A stretch of DNA of 64,000 nucleotides from Gnetum montanum (GCA_015680685.1 MNCI01001903.1:571298-635297); one strand, 5' to 3'. Positions 12,190-50,641 are shown, counted from the stretch's first letter. Notes: generated by a model not told the origin, from the letters alone. Numbers and translations are program-made.

Positions 12190-13739
12190 TCATGTGAATA
12201 AGGGAGTAGGGGTAGAATGATCCCCCACTAATAAAGTTTGATCTCAGGTATCCATATGGCATCATCTATGGATTGATTCTTTCAATAGATTAAGTACTCA
12301 TGCCTCTTCACTCCTTGAGTACTTGAAGCTTCTATTTGCTTGTGTACAATTGCCTTCTTCTCCATTGAAGGCTTGGACTACTCAATAGCCCCCTTCAACT
12401 CATCAATGCTACCTTGTATGGTTTCCTCATCAACTAGGCCATGATAGTGCACAAGATATCTAATATTAAATACAAAAGACATGCGAACATCATTGGAAAT
12501 ATTAAAAGAATTATCATTAATTTGGCCTTAATTCTAAAATGACCCATCTTCTTAGTTTCAACTTGGAGAAGTTAACACCTCTTACTCTTATCTTCTTCAA
12601 GTAAACCGAAACCAAGTCACCAACTGAAAAGTTAGACTTTTGATTACCCTCATTCTTCTTGAGAATACTCTCTTTAGTATTCTTCTCAAGATTTGATTTC
12701 ACTTGTGCATGAAAATCCTTCATCTCGTATGTAAAATTAGCACTAAGTTGAGCTTCACCATCAAAGCTCTTCAAATTGTTCACCATCTTAGATAAGAAAC
12801 CATAATTCACCTTAAATGGGCTTTTACCAATGACAACATAAAAAAATTATTATATGAAGATTTAGCATAACATAGAAAATCTTCCCATTGATTGGGTTGT
12901 TTATCACATAAACACCTTAATATATTCAACAAGGATTTATTCATCACCTTTGTTTGACCATAAGATTATGGATGATATGCACTAGAAAAATTTAACTTTG
13001 TCACTAAAATTTTCCAAAGGGACCTCCAAAATGACTAGTGAACTTGAAGTCTCTATCACTAACAATATTCAAATGAATATCATGTAACTTCACAACATGC
13101 TAGAAAAATAAATTTGCTACATGAACACTTACCTTTTTACACATAATGAAGTGCATCATCTTAAAGAACCTATTCACTATAGCAAAAATTGCATCATTTT
13201 CACTCTTGATCTTTGAAACATCACTCACAAAGTCCATTGACACACTTTTTCATGGACCCTTAGGAATTGACAAAGACATGTAATGTCCATTCACTGCTTT
13301 ACCTCCTTTGAATTTCTAATAAGTTAAAGACTCCATAAATTTTGAAACTTTCATTTCCACACTAGATCAAAAATAGTATTTGACCATAAGATCTCATGTT
13401 TTATCCCTACCCAAATGACTTGCCATGCCACTATAATACTTTTCAAACAAAATATTCTTTCTAGAATTATAATTATAAATACATACCTTTCCATTTTTGA
13501 ATAAAATTTCATCTTAAATATGATAGTCCCTCCATTGGTCTATCCTACTTAATAATGACTTTTTGAGGCTCCTTTAAACCTATCAACAATTTGAATCATA
13601 ATCATATAAATGAGGAAAATCACCCATACCTTCAACATTAGGTACATTGAAATTTATCACATACAAACTTGATAATGCATTAGCCATCACATTCCCTTTT
13701 CCACTTTTGTGTTAAATGATAGAATTAAAATTTTTGGAG
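12190..13739 (-). pseudogene. Chromovirus copy 2: RNase H end, integrase and chromodomain
   Basis: HKSGKGNVMANAL; ORF 12517-12810 is homologous to 6556-6903; nucleotide similarity to 5770-7080 throughout, in inverted orientation. Confidence 0.85.
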
Positions 13740-13868
13740 CTTAAAATTTTTACAAAATTTTAGAATAGATCTCATGCATGAAGGAAAAGAATGGGGAGGC
13801 TGAGAGAAATACTGTAGAAACTATAAAACAAAAAAAAATATTAAACAGAAAGTAATAGAAAGCTCATG

Positions 13869-13943
13869 ACATTGCACAACGTATGTTGTTACACAAAATG
13901 TTTTCGAGAACTTGCACCCCTCATCAATGTGTTTAGGCAATGC
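13869..13943 (-). ncRNA. Degenerate minimal type I hammerhead ribozyme, copy 1
   Basis: Minus: CATTGC-ctaa-ACACA-TTGATGA-GGGG-tgcaagt-TCTC-GAAA-ACATT-T-TGTGT-a-ACAAC-atac-GTTGT-GCAATG; C3>T in the core. Confidence 0.65.
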
Positions 13944-14717
13944 GGCCAGGTAGCCAAAGTTGCAAAGGCGAGGGAATGAGCATGCCAGTACATGTATAAA
14001 TAGGGTCCCAACTTCTAAAATTAGAAGAAACTCCCACTTTAAAATTATAGTGGGCCCCACTCGTCAGAGGCAAGATGGGGGTGGGATGTGGTACTGACAA
14101 AACTATTATAGAACAATATTTCAAAAGTGAACATGAAGCATTCAGCAAATAGGATCTTTTGGCAGAGCCGAAGGGTGTATAGGGTTTAGGGGAACCCTCA
14201 TGTTTAGATGGTGGACATGAGGGGTCTGACACCAAAGAATGTCATGCACGCAAGCGTCTGGCTGAAAAACAACAACAACGAAGAGACAAGCTGCAACGAT
14301 GTTGGAGAAGAAACAACTAGAGGTTGTGATGAAACTAAAGAAAGCTCCTTTAGAAGAAACCACAACCAAGAAGACCAACATAAGCAGAGCAGTGGTCAAG
14401 AAATGGATCAAATAGAAGAAACATGTTGTGGTCTGCAAAAACCTACAACGTGATCAAAACTCGTGGAGAACCTGCAAAAGGATTAAAACCTAACCAAAAA
14501 TAGAAAAAAATATAAAAATGGTTAGAATCTAGAGAATAGCAAAAGATGTTGTCAAGCAAGGCTCAGCAATTCCAAGGTAGCGAGATAGAGAGAAATTTTT
14601 TAGAAAATTTTAGAAATGGATTTGTGTGTCAAGGAAAATAATGGAAAGGTTGAGAGAAATACTGTAAAAATTGTAAAACAGAAAAACTGTTAAACAGAAA
14701 GTAATAGAAAGCTCATA

Positions 14718-14792
14718 GCATTGCACAACATATGTTGTTACACAAAATTTTTTTGGGGACTTGCACCCCTCATCAGTGTGTTTAGGCAATGT
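14718..14792 (-). ncRNA. Degenerate minimal type I hammerhead ribozyme, copy 2
   Basis: Minus: CATTGC-ctaa-ACACA-CTGATGA-GGGG-tgcaagt-CCCC-AAAA-AAATT-T-TGTGT-a-ACAAC-atat-GTTGT-GCAATG; intact CUGAUGA and perfect stem II, G12>A at a CpG. Confidence 0.65.
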
Positions 14793-14864
14793 GGCCAAGT
14801 AGCCGAAGTTGCAAAGGTAAGGGAATGAGCATGCTAGTACAATATAAATAGGGTCCCAACTTCT

Positions 14865-15030
14865 AAAATTAGAAGAAACCCCTTCTTTAAAATTAGAAGA
14901 AACTCTTGCTTTAAATTTAGAAGAAACTCCTGCTTTAAAAGTAGAAGAAACTCCCACTTTAAAATTAGAAGAAACTCTCTCTTTAAAATTAGAAGAAAAT
15001 CCCACTTTAAAATTAGAAGAAACTCCTACT
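14865..15030. repeat. 24-bp tandem repeat, about 7 copies
   Basis: Unit AAAATTAGAAGAAACTCCCACTTT; only about one copy at the equivalent position of the other direct repeat (14017-14047). Confidence 0.95.
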
Positions 15031-15514
15031 GTAGGAATTAGTGATCAAGAAAGGCCCTTCCTAGTTGGCTAAGAATTTGTTTGCATGCTCGCAAACAGCT
15101 TTGAGAACTAAGTCTCCTTCCTTGATCTTTTGCTTATTTAGGTTATGCTGATGTTGTCATTTCTACCTCTTCTAGTACCACTTGACATGAGCAAGCATTT
15201 GCACCCATTGCTCCTACATCAAGTCTAGGCCCATGGTACGCAGCTCCTTGTTTTGTTAATCATTGATAACATTTGATAAAGCTAATTGAAGCAATTACAC
15301 CTATAATTGAAAAGGTAAAACAACTTTAAAACCACAAACTAGGCTATATGGGGTTACATCAATTATCATTTGAAATGTTGTTTGATAGGCCCAAAGTACA
15401 TGGACAAGCCACTCATGCCACTTGTGTTTATTGTTGTTTGGCATCTTCTTGAGTAAGTTGATGATGGCCTTATTACTTACTTCAGCTTGTCCATTGGCCT
15501 AAGAGCAATATGGT

Positions 15515-17231
15515 TATTGCAACAAAAAATGTCAACCATTGGAAAGTCGAGGATTGTCAATCATGAATAATCTCAACCTTGACTCCCTAGGGCCTTTGAG
15601 AAAAATGGAATTCAGGGTGCTTTAGACAATTTGGTAGATCATCCAGGGACTTAGGGGGATGCAAAACAAGGTTGTAAAAAATGTAAAAATTGCAAATCTA
15701 AAACCCAAAATGAATACAAATTGCACAAAAAATGAAACTAGAAACTTTATTAATTAAATAAAGAATAAGTTTGGAGATGTGTACAAAAGTGGAGAGCAAA
15801 AGGGAGGTTCACTTAGGTGGGGGTTCCAACTCTGTTGAAGAAGATAGAATCTACTCCATGATCTAGATGCTCAACTGCTTCCAATGTTTTTGAACCTTCT
15901 TTGTTACCACTCAAGATTTGCAATGTTGATCACTACTGGGGTTGAAAAATGTGAAGGATTAGTGTATCCAAGATGCTTAATGCTAAGATTTGGGGATCCT
16001 ATAGGATAACATTGATACTCCAGGCTCACAAATCTTAAAGAGGGACAAGTAATAGAGGTAACAAGGCTACAATGCTTCTACACTAGTAGGCCCCAAGAAG
16101 CAACATTTCTACTAGAAAATAGGATCTCTTGGATGCCAAAAATAACAAATGCTCAAAATGCAAAGTATGTGCAATTGCCAAGTGTGTGGAACCTTGAAAT
16201 GGTGTGAGGGTTTGGTTTTTATAGGTATTTGGCCATAATTTGGGCTATAAATTTGTTGTAAATTGTTGATAGATTGGACTGTAAATTGGCTACAAATTGC
16301 TACAAATTTCTACCATGTTCATTGGGGTTGGTGTCCAAAATCTTCCCTGGGGGGTAGGGGGTGTTACCATATATGGAAAGTGTTAGATCCCCATGGTCAT
16401 TCCATTTATCAAAAATAGTAATGGGTGTGNNNNNNNNNNNNNNNNNNNNNNNNNNNNNNNNNNNNNNNNNNNNNNNNNNNNNNNNNNNNNNNNNNNNNNN
16501 NNNNNNNNNNNNNNNNNNNNNNNNNNNNNNNNNNNNNNNNNNNNNNNNNNNNNNNNNNNNNNNNNNNNNNNNNNNNNNNNNNNNNNNNNNNNNNNNNNNN
16601 NNNNNNNNNNNNNNNNNNNNNNNNNNNNNNNNNNNNNNNNNNNNNNNNNNNNNNNNNNNNNNNNNNNNNNNNNNNNNNNNNNNNNNNNNNNNNNNNNNNN
16701 NNNNNNNNNNNNNNNNNNNNNNNNNGGTGGTGGTGGGTGCGAAGGTGTCAACATTAAAGAGGATGAGAGATCAACACTAGGGGGTAAAGGTGAAACCTCT
16801 CTAGGATAAGTTAACCTCCTTCTATGTTGGGGGTGGGTGAGATCCACCTCTTGTATTCCTCCATGCTAGCTTTGATGCCTCTATGATGGGAGTAGGTAAC
16901 CCACACCCCCTCTAGGCTAAGTTACCACCTTGTAGGAGTTTTCCAACGTAGAAACGTGTATGCCTACCATAAAATCCATCAAATTTCCATTGTTGAAATC
17001 CCAAAAGTCATTTTAACCCCTCCTAAGCCCAAATATAGACACTAGGTAACTCTTTTCACTCTGGGAATGAGGCTCTGGCGACTTATGGGGCATTTTTTCA
17101 GCCCCAAAAGTATGAAATATGTGATATTGCCTCTTATGAATTACAATCTTCACATTTACAATGAAGTTTAGCCTCGGGTTTCATGGGATGGGGTTACAAA
17201 GGTTACAACATGAAAATTTGGTGGTGTTTCA
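15515..17231 (-). mobile_element. Solo LTR (Tat-type, spans an N-gap) inserted in the integrase
   Basis: TSD ATGGT at 15510-15514 and 17232-17236; ends TA(TG)...CA; removing it restores G I * H S F S S P Y C S * A N G Q A E; similar to LTR 40471-42056. Confidence 0.9.
16430..16725. other. Assembly gap
   Basis: N run. Confidence 1.
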
Positions 17232-22890: not shown

Positions 22891-23172
22891 NNNNNNNNNN
22901 NNNNNNNNNNNNNNNNNNNNNNNNNNNNNNNNNNNNNNNNNNNNNNNNNNNNNNNNNNNNNNNNNNNNNNNNNNNNNNNNNNNNNNNNNNNNNNNNNNNN
23001 NNNNNNNNNNNNNNNNNNNNNNNNNNNNNNNNNNNNNNNNNNNNNNNNNNNNNNNNNNNNNNNNNNNNNNNNNNNNNNNNNNNNNNNNNNNNNNNNNNNN
23101 NNNNNNNNNNNNNNNNNNNNNNNNNNNNNNNNNNNNNNNNNNNNNNNNNNNNNNNNNNNNNNNNNNNNNNNN
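22891..23172. other. Assembly gap
   Basis: N run. Confidence 1.
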
Positions 23173-26154
23173 GGAGGGGGGCATTCTGCATACGCGCCAA
23201 GTGGCGATCATGCAAGGGTAGTCATAAATGAAGTGGGTGAGCGTTTTAGATTTAATGTCGCAGCGTGGACACGTGGTGTCGTGCGTGATGTCGCACTGCT
23301 ATAGTACGGCACGCACGGGGAGTGCAGCAGATTTGATCAACCAGAGAAAGATTTTGACTTTCTCAAGGAGCCGCCCGCGCCAGATCTCCTGCCAGCTGTC
23401 TTCCGGGGGATATTTATGGGTCAGGATGTTGCGCGGCTCGAGGTGGATCCAGCCCATGCTCAGCATCCTCCACACGTGCCGACAAATGGTCTGCCAAGGT
23501 CTTGAATCGTGCGGGCCAGGTAGCCAAAGTGTGTACTTCCGGTGGGCGATGTAGGCCCACTGGCTACACTCCCCCCACGCACGAGTGAGCCGGTGGACCA
23601 GCTGTTACTATCCCATCGTGCACTCATCTTTGAAAGTCGTGACCCCCAGCCCCCCCACCTTACGAGGATGGGCCACACGGTGCCAGTTGACAAGATGGAG
23701 TTTGCTCCTCCTTTTGCCCCCCCGCCAAATGAAGCAGCGGATCATGGCGTTGATCTGGTTGATGATGGCCACAGGGGGCACAGCGACCGCCGCCACAAAG
23801 CATGTAGTGGCCGCAAGGATCCTAGTAGCTACGAGGAGGCGGCCCTTGCGTGTAAGAAAACGGTTTGCCCAGTGGTTGATGTGTTTCTCGAGCTTGGCCA
23901 GGAGGGGAGTCCAAGTATTGTTTCGTCCCCATTGGAATAACGGGATACCAAGGTAGGTATCGGTGAGCTTCCCGGTTTGAACGTTCAGGATTTGTGTAAC
24001 CCGGTGCTGCACCTGCAGGTCTACATTGATGAAGTACGCCGCCGACTTTGTGCGGTTGATTTTTAATCCTAATTCGGCGGCCAATCTGGTCAAAGCCAGA
24101 TTGATACACCGAGCCTGCGGGACCATTGCCTGGCTGAGAAGCATGGTATCGTCAGCATAGTGTTCAACACGGCAATCCACCCCCGCAATGTCCAGGCCCT
24201 TCACCCCCGAGGTGCTACAGTAAGATTGCATGAGGTCCATGGCAATGATGAAAAGCAAGGGGGACAGGGGGTCGCCTTACCTCAGACCTCTACTAGGGGA
24301 GGAAAAGCTCCACAACCGCCCCCCACGTCAAAAGAGAACCCAACGGAGGACTAGATATGCAGACATAATTGGATAAACCCCGGGTCAAAGCCTTTCCTAT
24401 GCATGATGTCATGTAGGGCGTTCCAGCTAAGCGTGTCATATGCCTTTGCTATGTCTAGCTTGAGACACAGACCAGGAAACCCCGTAGTACGGAGGGAATG
24501 AAGGACCTCTTGCATAAGAAGAACCTGATCCTGAAGAGTCCTCCCCTAGACGAAGCCCGCCTGATTACGTCCAACCAACTTAGGCAAGAGGGGTCTCAAC
24601 CAATTGACTAGGAGTTTGGAGAAGATGCGAATGAGAACATTGCACACACCAATGGGGCGAAAGTGCTCTGGGTGGTGTGCATTCAACTGTTTTGGGATGC
24701 AGATAATGCACGAGTAGTTGAGTTCGCGCCGTACTTGTCATTTGGCCAACATGACGTTGAAAGCATCCAGAAGATTGGGTTCCACAATATCCAAGAAAGC
24801 TCTGAAGAACTCCAGCGACCAATCGTCCGGTCCAGGCGCTTTACCTCCCGACATGTTGTTGATGGTGTTGGTCAACTCTGTCCCAGAGAAGGGGGCCAGA
24901 AGATGCTGATTGTTCGCAGCAGTGAGCACATTTTCCATAGGGACGGAGATGGGTTAGGTGGTGTTCTTGGTCCAAATGCGCCCCCAGTATCGTGAGAGCT
25001 CATTGGCGATCCCCTGCGAGTCATCAACCACCACCCTAGCCTAAGTACGGATGCTATGGATGTGGGTTTCGCCACGCGTCTTAGCCATGGCGAAGAAAAA
25101 TTTCGTATGTCGGTCCCCCTCGCGGTTCCATCTAATCTGGGATCGTTGCTGCTAATAGGTCTCCTCCTCGTGGTCTAGACTTTGGAGTTGATGGAGGAGG
25201 TGCATCTCCTCCGTGTGCAGGTCCTCCCTAGTCTTTTATTGTGCCTGGATGTGTCCTAGCCGCTCCCGAACCATCTTGTGGCCAGCCCAAAATGAAAACT
25301 TCTCCCCCACCGGGAGGGCTCGGATGGCCCACTTGAGCCTAAGAAGAGCTTCTTTGAGGAAGGTCCAAGGGTCCATCCGACCCGGTTGGTAATCGGCCCA
25401 GATGTCCTCCACCAGGGGACAAAGCCACGGCTTGGCAAGCCAAGTGGGCTTGAACCGAAAAGGGCGTGGGGCCCGGGGTGGAGGCGGGCCAATGGACACA
25501 ACCAGCGATCGGTGGTCAGAAGCAGCCCGCTCCTGCCCGGTCACGTTGATGGTAGTGCCAAGGAGGAGAGCAGAACTAACACAAATGTGATCAATGCAGG
25601 TGAGGACACGGTGCACCCCTTTCCTCCGGTTGCTCTAGGTGAAGTGGCAGTTTGCTATGGGTAGATCAACAAGAGACGAGCGCTCAAGGAACTCTATGAA
25701 ATCAGGCGCGCCTGGGGGGGGGGGCAGCCCCCCCAGATTTCTCCCAGGGGTACAAACACTGGTTGAAGTCACTGACAACCACCCAGGAGCCGTGATCAGG
25801 CACCAGCAAGGCCACCCGATTCAACTCCTGAAGCCGTGATTCCCAAGCCTGCGCCCCATAGAAGTTGGTCAACCAAAAACCATGGGCAGGGACGTGAACC
25901 ATGATGGTCCATGGGGAGACGTCCATAAGAGTGGTGGCGGGGTGCACAAGAATGGCCAGGCCTCCGGCCCGGCCCTGGCTGGGTTGTAGGTATGTGGTCC
26001 AGCCCGTCCACTGGAGGTGACCGGATTCCGCAGCCTGCAGCTTGGTTTCCTGTAGGCAAACCACATCATAATTCTCCTCTCTGACAATACAGCGTAGGGT
26101 ATTTTGTTTATAGGGGGTACCCTACCCTCTGCAATTCCAACTGAAAATCTTCAT
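23173..26154 (-). pseudogene. LINE ORF2: AP endonuclease, reverse transcriptase, zf-RVT (stops and frameshifts)
   Basis: MKIFSWNCRG at 26154; CLQETK; SDFN; IDH; SDH; KAPGPDD; LR*GDPLSP; YADD; HLVNW..GGLG; KVKIFLW...CPRC...THF. Confidence 0.95.
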
Positions 26155-26159
26155 GCGCA

Positions 26160-27400
26160 ACCAGAGGTGTGGCGTTGGTAGACCTCTCGTAAGGTCTGCT
26201 GTTGGCCCAAGTCGATGTGTCATTGGGTTTGTCGACTTCTGGATCGGGACTCAGTCGAGCGGCCTGGGCGCCCCTCCCCCTTGCGGACCACAGGGGTGCA
26301 GCCAGTTTCCTCAGCTGGGGACTGTGGTGCCTTGCGCTGTCTAGTCCGGGTGCTCCTCCGGACAATGTTGACCCATTCCCCCAGCGGGGGAAGCACTGGT
26401 TCCGGTTCATGTGGTTGTGGTTGGTGGGTGGGGGCTAGTGAGCGGGAGCGGTGGGGTGTCTTAATGGGGGATCTGTGGGTGGTAGTGGGNNNNNNNNNNN
26501 NNNNNNNNNNNNNNNNNNNNNNNNNNNNNNNNNNNNNNNNNNNNNNNNNNNNNNNNNNNNNNNNNNNNNNNNNNNNNNNNNNNNNNNNNNNNNNNNNNNN
26601 NNNNNNNGTGGGTGGGGTGGGTGGTTGGGAAGGGGGCGTAGTCGTCCCTTACAGCCCATAGTGATCCAATTGCCCTCCTCGAAAAGTTGGCGGGCCGAGT
26701 TATTCGATCAGGGCCTGTGAAAGCGACAGTTTGCCTCGCGGTGGCCCGGCTTACCATAGCATCCACATCCGACCGGCTGGTCCGTTCGGGGGACCTTGTC
26801 ATGCAGCGGCTGGTCCCAAGTATCCATGTTTTCATAGGTAATTTGGAGGGATTCCTCCCCCCTGGGAGTTCCAAAACGACCTCCCAGACGAGGTCGATCG
26901 TCGTTAGGTTTCGCCAAACACAGAAACGGGTAGAGCCCATCCGGTCCAGTGACCGTGTGACCCTGTCGAAGGCGATGAAATCGCCGAAGTGCCCTGCCAT
27001 CTCCTGCAAGAACTCAAGACTCCATAACTCCCACGGGATATCGGCCACCCAGATCCAGACTGGGGCGCGGGTAAACAGATTGGGTTCTCTGTGAGCGTCG
27101 GGGCGCCAGGGGGTCAATGCAAGACCATGGGCCCCATAGAACCAAGGCTCGCCAAGAAGGACGGAGTCGTGGGCTTGCAAGGAGGGGAGGACAAAGAGGA
27201 GCAGGTCCTCCGAAAGGCTCCGGACTGTAACGTCCTCGAATTTCCACTGCTCTTTGACCCAGCAGGGTATCAGGTCAAGCCGGGGACGGCTCCCCCGGGA
27301 GATGAAACGGTCGATGAGGCTCCGTTCCATGGTACGAACACCTTCGGTAGGTGGCAGATGCAAAGGCGCAGGGTGTTGTTGGAACGGGAATGAGCCTCCA
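26160..27400 (-). CDS. LINE ORF1 (DUF4283-type RRM-like protein), spans a gap
   Basis: LLLFVLPS...VLLGEPWFYGAHGLALTPWRP...APVWIWVADIPWELWS...MAGHFG. Confidence 0.85.
26490..26607. other. Assembly gap
   Basis: N run. Confidence 1.
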
Positions 27401-50517: not shown

Positions 50518-50641
50518 NNNNNNNNNNNNNNNNNNNNNNNNNNNNNNNNNNNNNNNNNNNNNNNNNNNNNNNNNNNNNNNNNNNNNNNNNNNNNNNNNNN
50601 NNNNNNNNNNNNNNNNNNNNNNNNNNNNNNNNNNNNNNNNN
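50518..50641. other. Assembly gap
   Basis: N run. Confidence 1.

Follow-up and report, generated by a model that had tools for sequence, protein, structure and literature searches.

Our analysis suggests that the segment from 13743 to about 15036 is an old and inactive insertion of approximately 1.5 units, belonging to an abundant, retrozyme-like family of non-coding repeats with a unit of about 850 nt and an ancestral type I hammerhead (we place the probability of this reading at about 0.68). The segment lies within a 64-kb stretch of DNA, which was analysed in its whole length and is referred to here as the window. Retrozymes are genome-encoded, viroid-like circular RNAs; those described so far are LTR-type elements with hammerheads of type III in plants, and tandem, Penelope-linked elements with hammerheads of type I in animals. 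An initial annotation of this DNA had proposed twin hammerhead ribozymes in a retrozyme-like element, and this overall interpretation is partly supported by our results. Particularly, the type I topology stands, whereas the notion of two local ribozymes does not, both cores being mutated and neither matching an Rfam hammerhead model. The locus itself is an ordinary fossil, and its value lies in pointing to the family.

Layout of the repeat unit

Two direct repeats of about 305 nt each, located at 13743-14047 and 14593-14895, show 86.9% identity over 306 alignment columns. Their starts are separated by 849-850 nt and both carry a hammerhead-like motif on the minus strand, just as the initial annotation had described. 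The components of the insertion are as follows:

13743-14047, minus strand: repeat copy 1, forming in ribozyme orientation the 3' end (~305 nt) of the full unit, with a sharp edge of family coverage at ~13747
14048-14592, minus strand: internal, non-repeated part of the 849-nt unit, 545 nt, non-coding, with short ORFs only and a high depth of family contigs
14593-14895, minus strand: repeat copy 2, an upstream partial unit that gives a pseudo-LTR-like arrangement, with family coverage fading at ~14874
14859-15030, no strand assigned: 24-nt minisatellite, 7.1 copies (TRF), at the outer end of copy 2, with ~1.3 copies at 14016-14047

Read on the minus strand, a partial upstream unit is followed by a full unit, and the ribozyme is located ~150 nt from the 3' end of the unit. 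The locus therefore amounts to ~1.5 units, whose two motifs are mutated and spaced by 849 nt, and it shows no head-to-tail multimer. Sequence comparison revealed neither a third copy of the repeat within the 64-kb window nor a second copy of the internal part (14048-14592) elsewhere in it. The unit has a GC content of 38.9% and contains only short ORFs; one of 79 aa, which runs across the ribozyme, was searched against 5.8 billion clustered proteins and 1.84 billion representatives, and neither set contains a relative. Searches based on ORFs and protein homologues found no reverse transcriptase (RT) or endonuclease (EN) remnant between the repeats.

The K2P distance between the two repeats is 0.133, with 27-29 transitions versus about 9 transversions. 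Conifers accumulate ~2e-9 substitutions per site per year, according to the spruce genome literature, and at this rate the insertion would be estimated at tens of millions of years of age, provided that the repeats were identical when inserted. The ribozyme domain differs between copies at 8 of 75 positions, and the remainder of the repeat at 31 of 230. Because the divergence of the domain equals that of the rest, the locus appears to have been free of constraint and under neutral drift ever since the two repeats arose.

Hammerhead-like motifs and their damage

Both repeats hold the same arrangement of motif and extended domain:

13891-13932, minus strand (read from 13932 to 13891): hammerhead-like motif copy 1, identified by its sequence, a descriptor match and the family-majority letters at 13927, 13909 and 13899
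14740-14781, minus strand (read from 14781 to 14740): hammerhead-like motif copy 2, identified by its sequence, a descriptor match and the family-majority letters at 14748 and 14749
13869-13943, minus strand: extended ribozyme domain copy 1, with a 7-bp distal helix, a 4-nt internal loop, a 5-bp helix I and a side hairpin at 13889-13876
14718-14792, minus strand: extended ribozyme domain copy 2, which matches copy 1 in the architecture of its minimum free energy (MFE) fold

On the minus strand, the domain starts with a 7-nt strand (GCAUUGC in copy 1, with A as the first base in copy 2), followed by a 4-nt spacer, ACACA, a CUGAUGA-like heptamer, GGGG and a 7-nt loop. It continues with the 3' strand of stem II, a GAAA-like tetramer, the 6-nt helix III stretch, a U and UGUGU, and closes with a small hairpin and the complement of the initial 7-nt strand. 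Helix I would thereby comprise 5 bp and continue into the 7-bp distal helix, helix II would have 4 bp and a 7-nt loop, and helix III would consist of two A-U pairs only, around two central nucleotides. In both copies, the descriptor match and the MFE fold show a helix II that is closed by its loop and includes the G10.1-C11.1 pair, together with a helix I that is formed by the flanks. The predicted topology is of type I, since helix I is where both ends of the RNA exit; the helix I hairpin upstream of the core that characterizes type III is absent from both sequence and fold.

The two copies have been damaged in different ways, which bears out a further claim of the initial annotation. Copy 1 carries C3>U (an A on the plus strand at 13927), G-U wobbles in stem II and AACAUU in helix III, while its G12 is intact. 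In copy 2, the CUGAUGA heptamer and the GGGG/CCCC stem II are intact; G12 is replaced by A (a T on the plus strand at 14754), at a site that is a CpG and is retained as such in copy 1, and helix III reads AAAAUU. The full invariant core (C3 U4 G5 A6 G8 A9, G12 A13 A14 A15.1, U16.1 and H17) is incomplete in both, and the two local ribozymes are predicted to be dead (C3>U and G12>A, respectively). The cuts that the ancestral motif would make are located on the minus strand between 13896 and 13895 in copy 1 and between 14745 and 14744 in copy 2; the sites previously proposed, after 14745 and 13896, had been placed correctly, 849 nt apart. The window as a whole shows a CpG observed/expected ratio of 0.33 and a GC content of 38%, consistent with a heavy, methylation-driven decay of CpG.

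Statistical and structural support for the motif

A descriptor with a UH cleavage site, minimum lengths of 5 bp for helix I and 4 bp for helix II, and no more than one core mismatch was applied to both strands of the 64-kb window, where it matched the two motif sites only. First-order Markov resampling of the window (300 replicates) gave 0.01 sites on average, and no replicate contained two (0/300). The two sites count, however, as a single event, because both were copied from one ancestor. Such events are expected about once per ~6 Mb and tens of megabases would contain some chance near-matches, so the local sequence on its own is suggestive, not decisive.

The covariance models of Rfam retrieved no hammerhead at the gathering score anywhere in the window and, at E<=10, none in 2.8 kb or in two 86-nt slices around the copies; the remaining Rfam matches (miRNA and sRNA) were at chance level and were set aside. 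MFE folding of the 83-nt domain recovers the expected architecture in both copies, although the fold is no more stable than those of shuffled sequences (z = 0.23 for copy 1 and -0.25 for copy 2). The 849-nt monomer, in turn, reaches z = -6 relative to shuffles, and the complementary strand scores equally. Since both strands score alike, this value is uninformative about a minus-strand RNA and reflects inverted repeats at the DNA level instead of a strand-specific RNA.

These results bear on the notion that the hammerhead-like string is a chance match within an ordinary plant repeat. With about one match per 6 Mb expected for the one-mismatch descriptor, some are due to appear in ~60 Mb, and both the silence of the Rfam models and fold z-scores close to 0 fit such an origin. 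The 7-bp distal helix and the side hairpin that accompany the motif in both copies argue against it, and so does the wider family described below, whose majority nears a perfect core and palindrome at each damaged position listed. We consider a chance match to be very unlikely.

A high-copy family in public DNA data

Logan contigs of two public DNA runs with different organism labels were aligned to 13700-15100 (1,401 letters) at a likeness of at least 80%, which placed ~10,700 and ~9,300 contig pieces, respectively, on this region. Between ~13747 and ~14874, summed word depth ranges from thousands up to tens of thousands, about 100-fold higher than in the left flank bin (about 50-100). Because contig depth is far above that of the flank in both runs, the entire 849-nt unit, its internal 545 nt included, is a very high-copy repeat with sharp edges. 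Family depth peaks at 14687-14780, in the ribozyme domain of copy 2. Over the minisatellite (14859-15030) it falls to ~50-700, and the growth of this array is an expansion specific to the locus, since family contigs barely cover it.

The letters that the family carries at five of the damaged positions are, with the share of depth in each of the two runs:

13927, plus strand: A>G, restores C3 (64% and 84%)
13909, plus strand: A>G, restores a G-C pair of stem II (93% and 94%)
14749, plus strand: T>G, restores AACGUU in helix III (81% and 64%)
14748, plus strand: T>C, restores AACGUU in helix III (68% and 47%)
13899, plus strand: T>C, restores AACGUU in helix III (72% and 22%)

Among the damaged positions listed, the family majority always shifts toward the perfect core and the palindrome. 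The restored helix III stretch forms, together with its flanks, the 10-nt palindrome AAAACGUUUU. In this regard, the palindrome AACGTT, which the initial annotation had put forward as the ancestral helix III from the two local copies, is actually observed in the letters favoured in the high-copy family at 13899, 14748 and 14749.

Joints within the DNA contigs, with skips of ~837-872 and go-backs of ~836, were considered as evidence of tandems or circles and dismissed, as they arise from alignments that switch between the two local copies. Anchored-pattern searches for further copies of the family gave 0 matches in collections of metagenome, genome and viral contigs.

RNA reads

The RNA data comprised an oligo-dT run, of which 26% was read, and a run labelled as 'transcriptomic other', of which 2% was read; both libraries are ill-suited to non-polyadenylated circles. 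The reads aligned numbered 99 and 233, from both strands and mostly less than 90% alike, and none in the portions read of either run (26% and 2%) was at least 99% alike to the locus. No back-joints or circle junctions appeared in these two partly read runs, which constitute a weak test for circles devoid of a poly-A tail, nor were there pile-ups of read ends at 13896 or 14745, where the test is equally weak. Loose poly-A ends at 13818-13861 in run X16 were rejected as polyadenylation of the element, since they correspond to an A-rich stretch.

The failure to see circles and cut ends, within the limits of so weak a test, would also be expected if the hammerhead were a mere relic and the unit were the terminal part (pseudo-LTR or 3' UTR) of an autonomous Penelope-like element, or a satellite, with no ribozyme-dependent circular RNA involved. 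Such a unit would have multiplied by unequal crossing-over, by segmental duplication or as deleted Penelope copies. The repeat-unique-repeat organization with a ribozyme ~150 nt from the 3' end has the look of a partial-tandem Penelope insertion (PMC8557442), the internal minisatellite has expanded locally at the DNA level, and the minimal hammerheads of Penelope elements are poor cleavers in vitro with an unknown role (PMC4209133; PMC7761336). This explanation is at odds with the high copy number of the full 849-nt unit, internal 545 nt included, with searches in which no RT or EN remnants were found inside the unit, and with the ribozyme domain being the best-kept stretch of the family. On balance, we judge it unlikely, and favour the retrozyme-like family with an ancestral type I hammerhead.

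Comparison with known hammerhead elements

The canonical type I motif of metazoans has a helix II of 4 bp, a helix III of 1-2 bp and a palindromic loop of 2-4 nt; in tandem repeats it works as a double hammerhead (PMC4209133). Non-LTR retrozymes have a GC content below 45-50%, and plant LTR retrozymes one above 55% (PMC7229834). Penelope-like elements are known from Pinus and Picea (PMC8557442; PMC9033089), with both the EN+ 'Dryads' and the EN-minus type in Pinus taeda and Picea abies (PMC9033089), and a preprint makes the case that the retrozymes of animals derive from Penelope-like elements as non-autonomous forms (10.64898/2026.07.22.740005).

On paper, the family would resemble a non-LTR retrozyme or a Penelope satellite, in a plant. 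This animal-type class is favoured because the motif is of type I and dimer-type, the GC content is low, and the unit is non-coding and lacks family-conserved LTR ends, PBS or TSD. Its likeness to metazoan non-LTR retrozymes (Cervera & de la Pena 2020, PMC7229834) lies in a type I motif with a weak, palindromic helix III in each unit, in a putative head-to-tail arrangement, in a low GC and the lack of LTR, PBS, PPT and coding capacity, and in the proposed dependence on Penelope-like elements (PMC7229834; bioRxiv 10.64898/2026.07.22.740005). Those elements, however, inhabit animals, whereas the present one is found in a conifer-like seed plant, and its unit of 849 nt is 2-5 times longer than their ~150-450 nt, outside the size range of the class. 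Further differences are that helix I here enters a three-way junction, that the locus holds 1.5 units with both ribozymes mutated, and that no circular RNA was seen in the two partly read RNA runs.

Penelope-like elements with hammerheads in their pseudo-LTRs, including the Dryad and EN-minus elements of conifers (PMC4209133, PMC8557442, PMC9033089), share with the present element the repeat-unique-repeat partial tandem, the location of the ribozyme near the 3' end of the unit and a dimer-type helix III, and such elements occur in Pinus and Picea. In contrast to them, an ORF for RT or GIY-YIG is missing between the repeats described here, and so are adjacent reverse-complement telomeric repeats. 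Moreover, the minimal hammerheads of Penelope lack helix III, whereas the motif studied here has a tiny but real helix III and a 4-bp helix II, which brings it nearer to the 'canonical' metazoan type I. A short helix III extended by the pairing of two copies is also a feature of the double hammerheads of newt satellite 2 and ASBVd (Forster et al. 1988, as cited in PMC4209133); activity has been shown experimentally for those, while pairing is suggested here by the palindrome of the family majority.

Plant LTR retrozymes (Cervera et al. 2016, PMC4918200) likewise have a ribozyme in each of two direct repeats (~300-350 nt) that bracket a non-coding RNA of ~700-850 nt in a plant host. They have, however, type III motifs, LTR ends and a tRNA-Met PBS and a PPT on the ribozyme strand, none of which is present here, the PBS- and PPT-like strings of our element being on the other strand; they are also flanked by 4-bp TSDs and exceed 55% GC, whereas no TSD was found here and GC is 39%. 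The initial annotation had set the element apart from plant LTR retrozymes on account of their type III motifs; the type I topology, the low GC, the lack of coding capacity and a PBS that is not conserved in the family agree with this distinction.

Those plus-strand strings invite, in turn, the view that the element is a plant LTR-type retrozyme or TRIM read on the plus strand, with a TATA-like box, a tRNA-Met PBS-like site and a purine tract. A TATAAATAGGG box is kept in both repeats (13995-14005 and 14843-14853, plus strand, opposite to the ribozyme), TGGTACTGACA is located at 14089-14099, after the first repeat, and a purine-rich stretch (14575-14592) lies ahead of the second. In spite of these likenesses, the ribozyme occupies the opposite strand and is of type I rather than type III. 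The repeats have neither a TG start nor a CA end, and no 4-bp TSD flanking the element was detected; the only recurring string, TTAAAATT, was dismissed as a TSD because it is of low complexity and belongs also to the minisatellite. The PBS-like TGGTA (14089-14093) is ~40 nt away from the repeat end, and its TGG is not the family majority, which reads AT and not TG at 14089-14090 (14089 T>A, 14090 G>T). A GC content of 39% likewise falls short of the >55% of plant LTR retrozymes (PMC7229834). Strand, topology, ends, PBS, TSD and GC largely refute an LTR retrozyme or TRIM on the plus strand, which we regard as extremely improbable.

A model for the ancestral family

Coming back to a retrozyme-like family of the non-LTR kind, we consider it very probable, from the sequences of the locus and of the family, that its ancestral unit bore a complete type I hammerhead of the dimer type. 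In this model, helix I would have had 5 bp, extended by the side hairpin and the 7-bp distal helix, helix II would have had 4 bp and a 7-nt loop, and helix III would have had 2 bp capped by a palindromic CG, reading AACGUU. In intact members, neighbouring ribozymes within multimeric minus-strand transcripts would pair with each other via AACGUU and give rise to a double hammerhead, in which each ribozyme would cleave after UUU and release monomers of ~849 nt. The monomers would be circularised by a host ligase, and a Penelope-like reverse transcriptase would copy them and insert partial tandems. The family would thus be a non-LTR retrozyme-like, non-autonomous retroelement. We infer cleavage, circles and mobilising enzyme for the family as a whole, and the locus described here would be one of its decayed copies.

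Going one step further, conifers might host still-active, high-copy non-LTR retrozymes, with circRNAs of ~850 nt, type I double hammerheads and Penelope-like mobilisation. We put forward this extension tentatively, as it is more doubtful than probable; if it applied, the mobilising elements would possibly be the Penelope-like elements thought to be of arthropod origin. No published description of such a family in conifers was found in the searchable literature, whose reach does not extend to Lin et al. 2016. An active conifer family would overturn the rule that assigns type III LTR retrozymes to plants and type I non-LTR ones to animals, and would imply that a ribozyme/circRNA system crossed kingdoms along with its retrotransposon.

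A dimer-type hammerhead of type I in a repeat this abundant, and in a conifer-like genome, would carry the animal-type class over into seed plants, and would supply the Penelope-like elements of conifers with a candidate non-autonomous partner. The resulting prediction is that circular RNAs of ~850 nt occur in conifer tissues.

Genomic surroundings

The hammerhead repeat sits between two different retrotransposon remnants. Directly to its left (13150-13720, minus strand) there is a degenerate fragment of a Ty3/gypsy-type pol gene with several stops, in which a motif of the RNase H end (GKGNVMANALS-like) is followed by the zinc-finger/N-terminal region of an integrase. Directly to its right (15040-15520, minus strand), a second gypsy-type fragment corresponds to the C-terminal core of an integrase (NGQAEVSNK...LWAYQT-like). 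A single gene split by the insertion was considered and rejected, because the order of the two fragments does not fit, which is the reason for regarding them as different remnants. Both DNA runs also show a very high copy number for 15038-15090.

A Pfam search of the ten longest ORFs of the window revealed no Penelope-like RT; LINE-type RVT_1 and DUF4283 domains were found elsewhere. ORFs on the minus strand at 23611-24258 and 26464-27363 gave two matches: one to RVT_1, weak and short of the cut-off (E 7.8e-5), and one to DUF4283, which is clear (E 7e-19). They belong to a plant LINE-type element in a GC-rich block at 20-28 kb, not to a Penelope-like RT. The window is interrupted by runs of N at 16430-16725, 22891-23172, 26490-26607 and 50518-50641.
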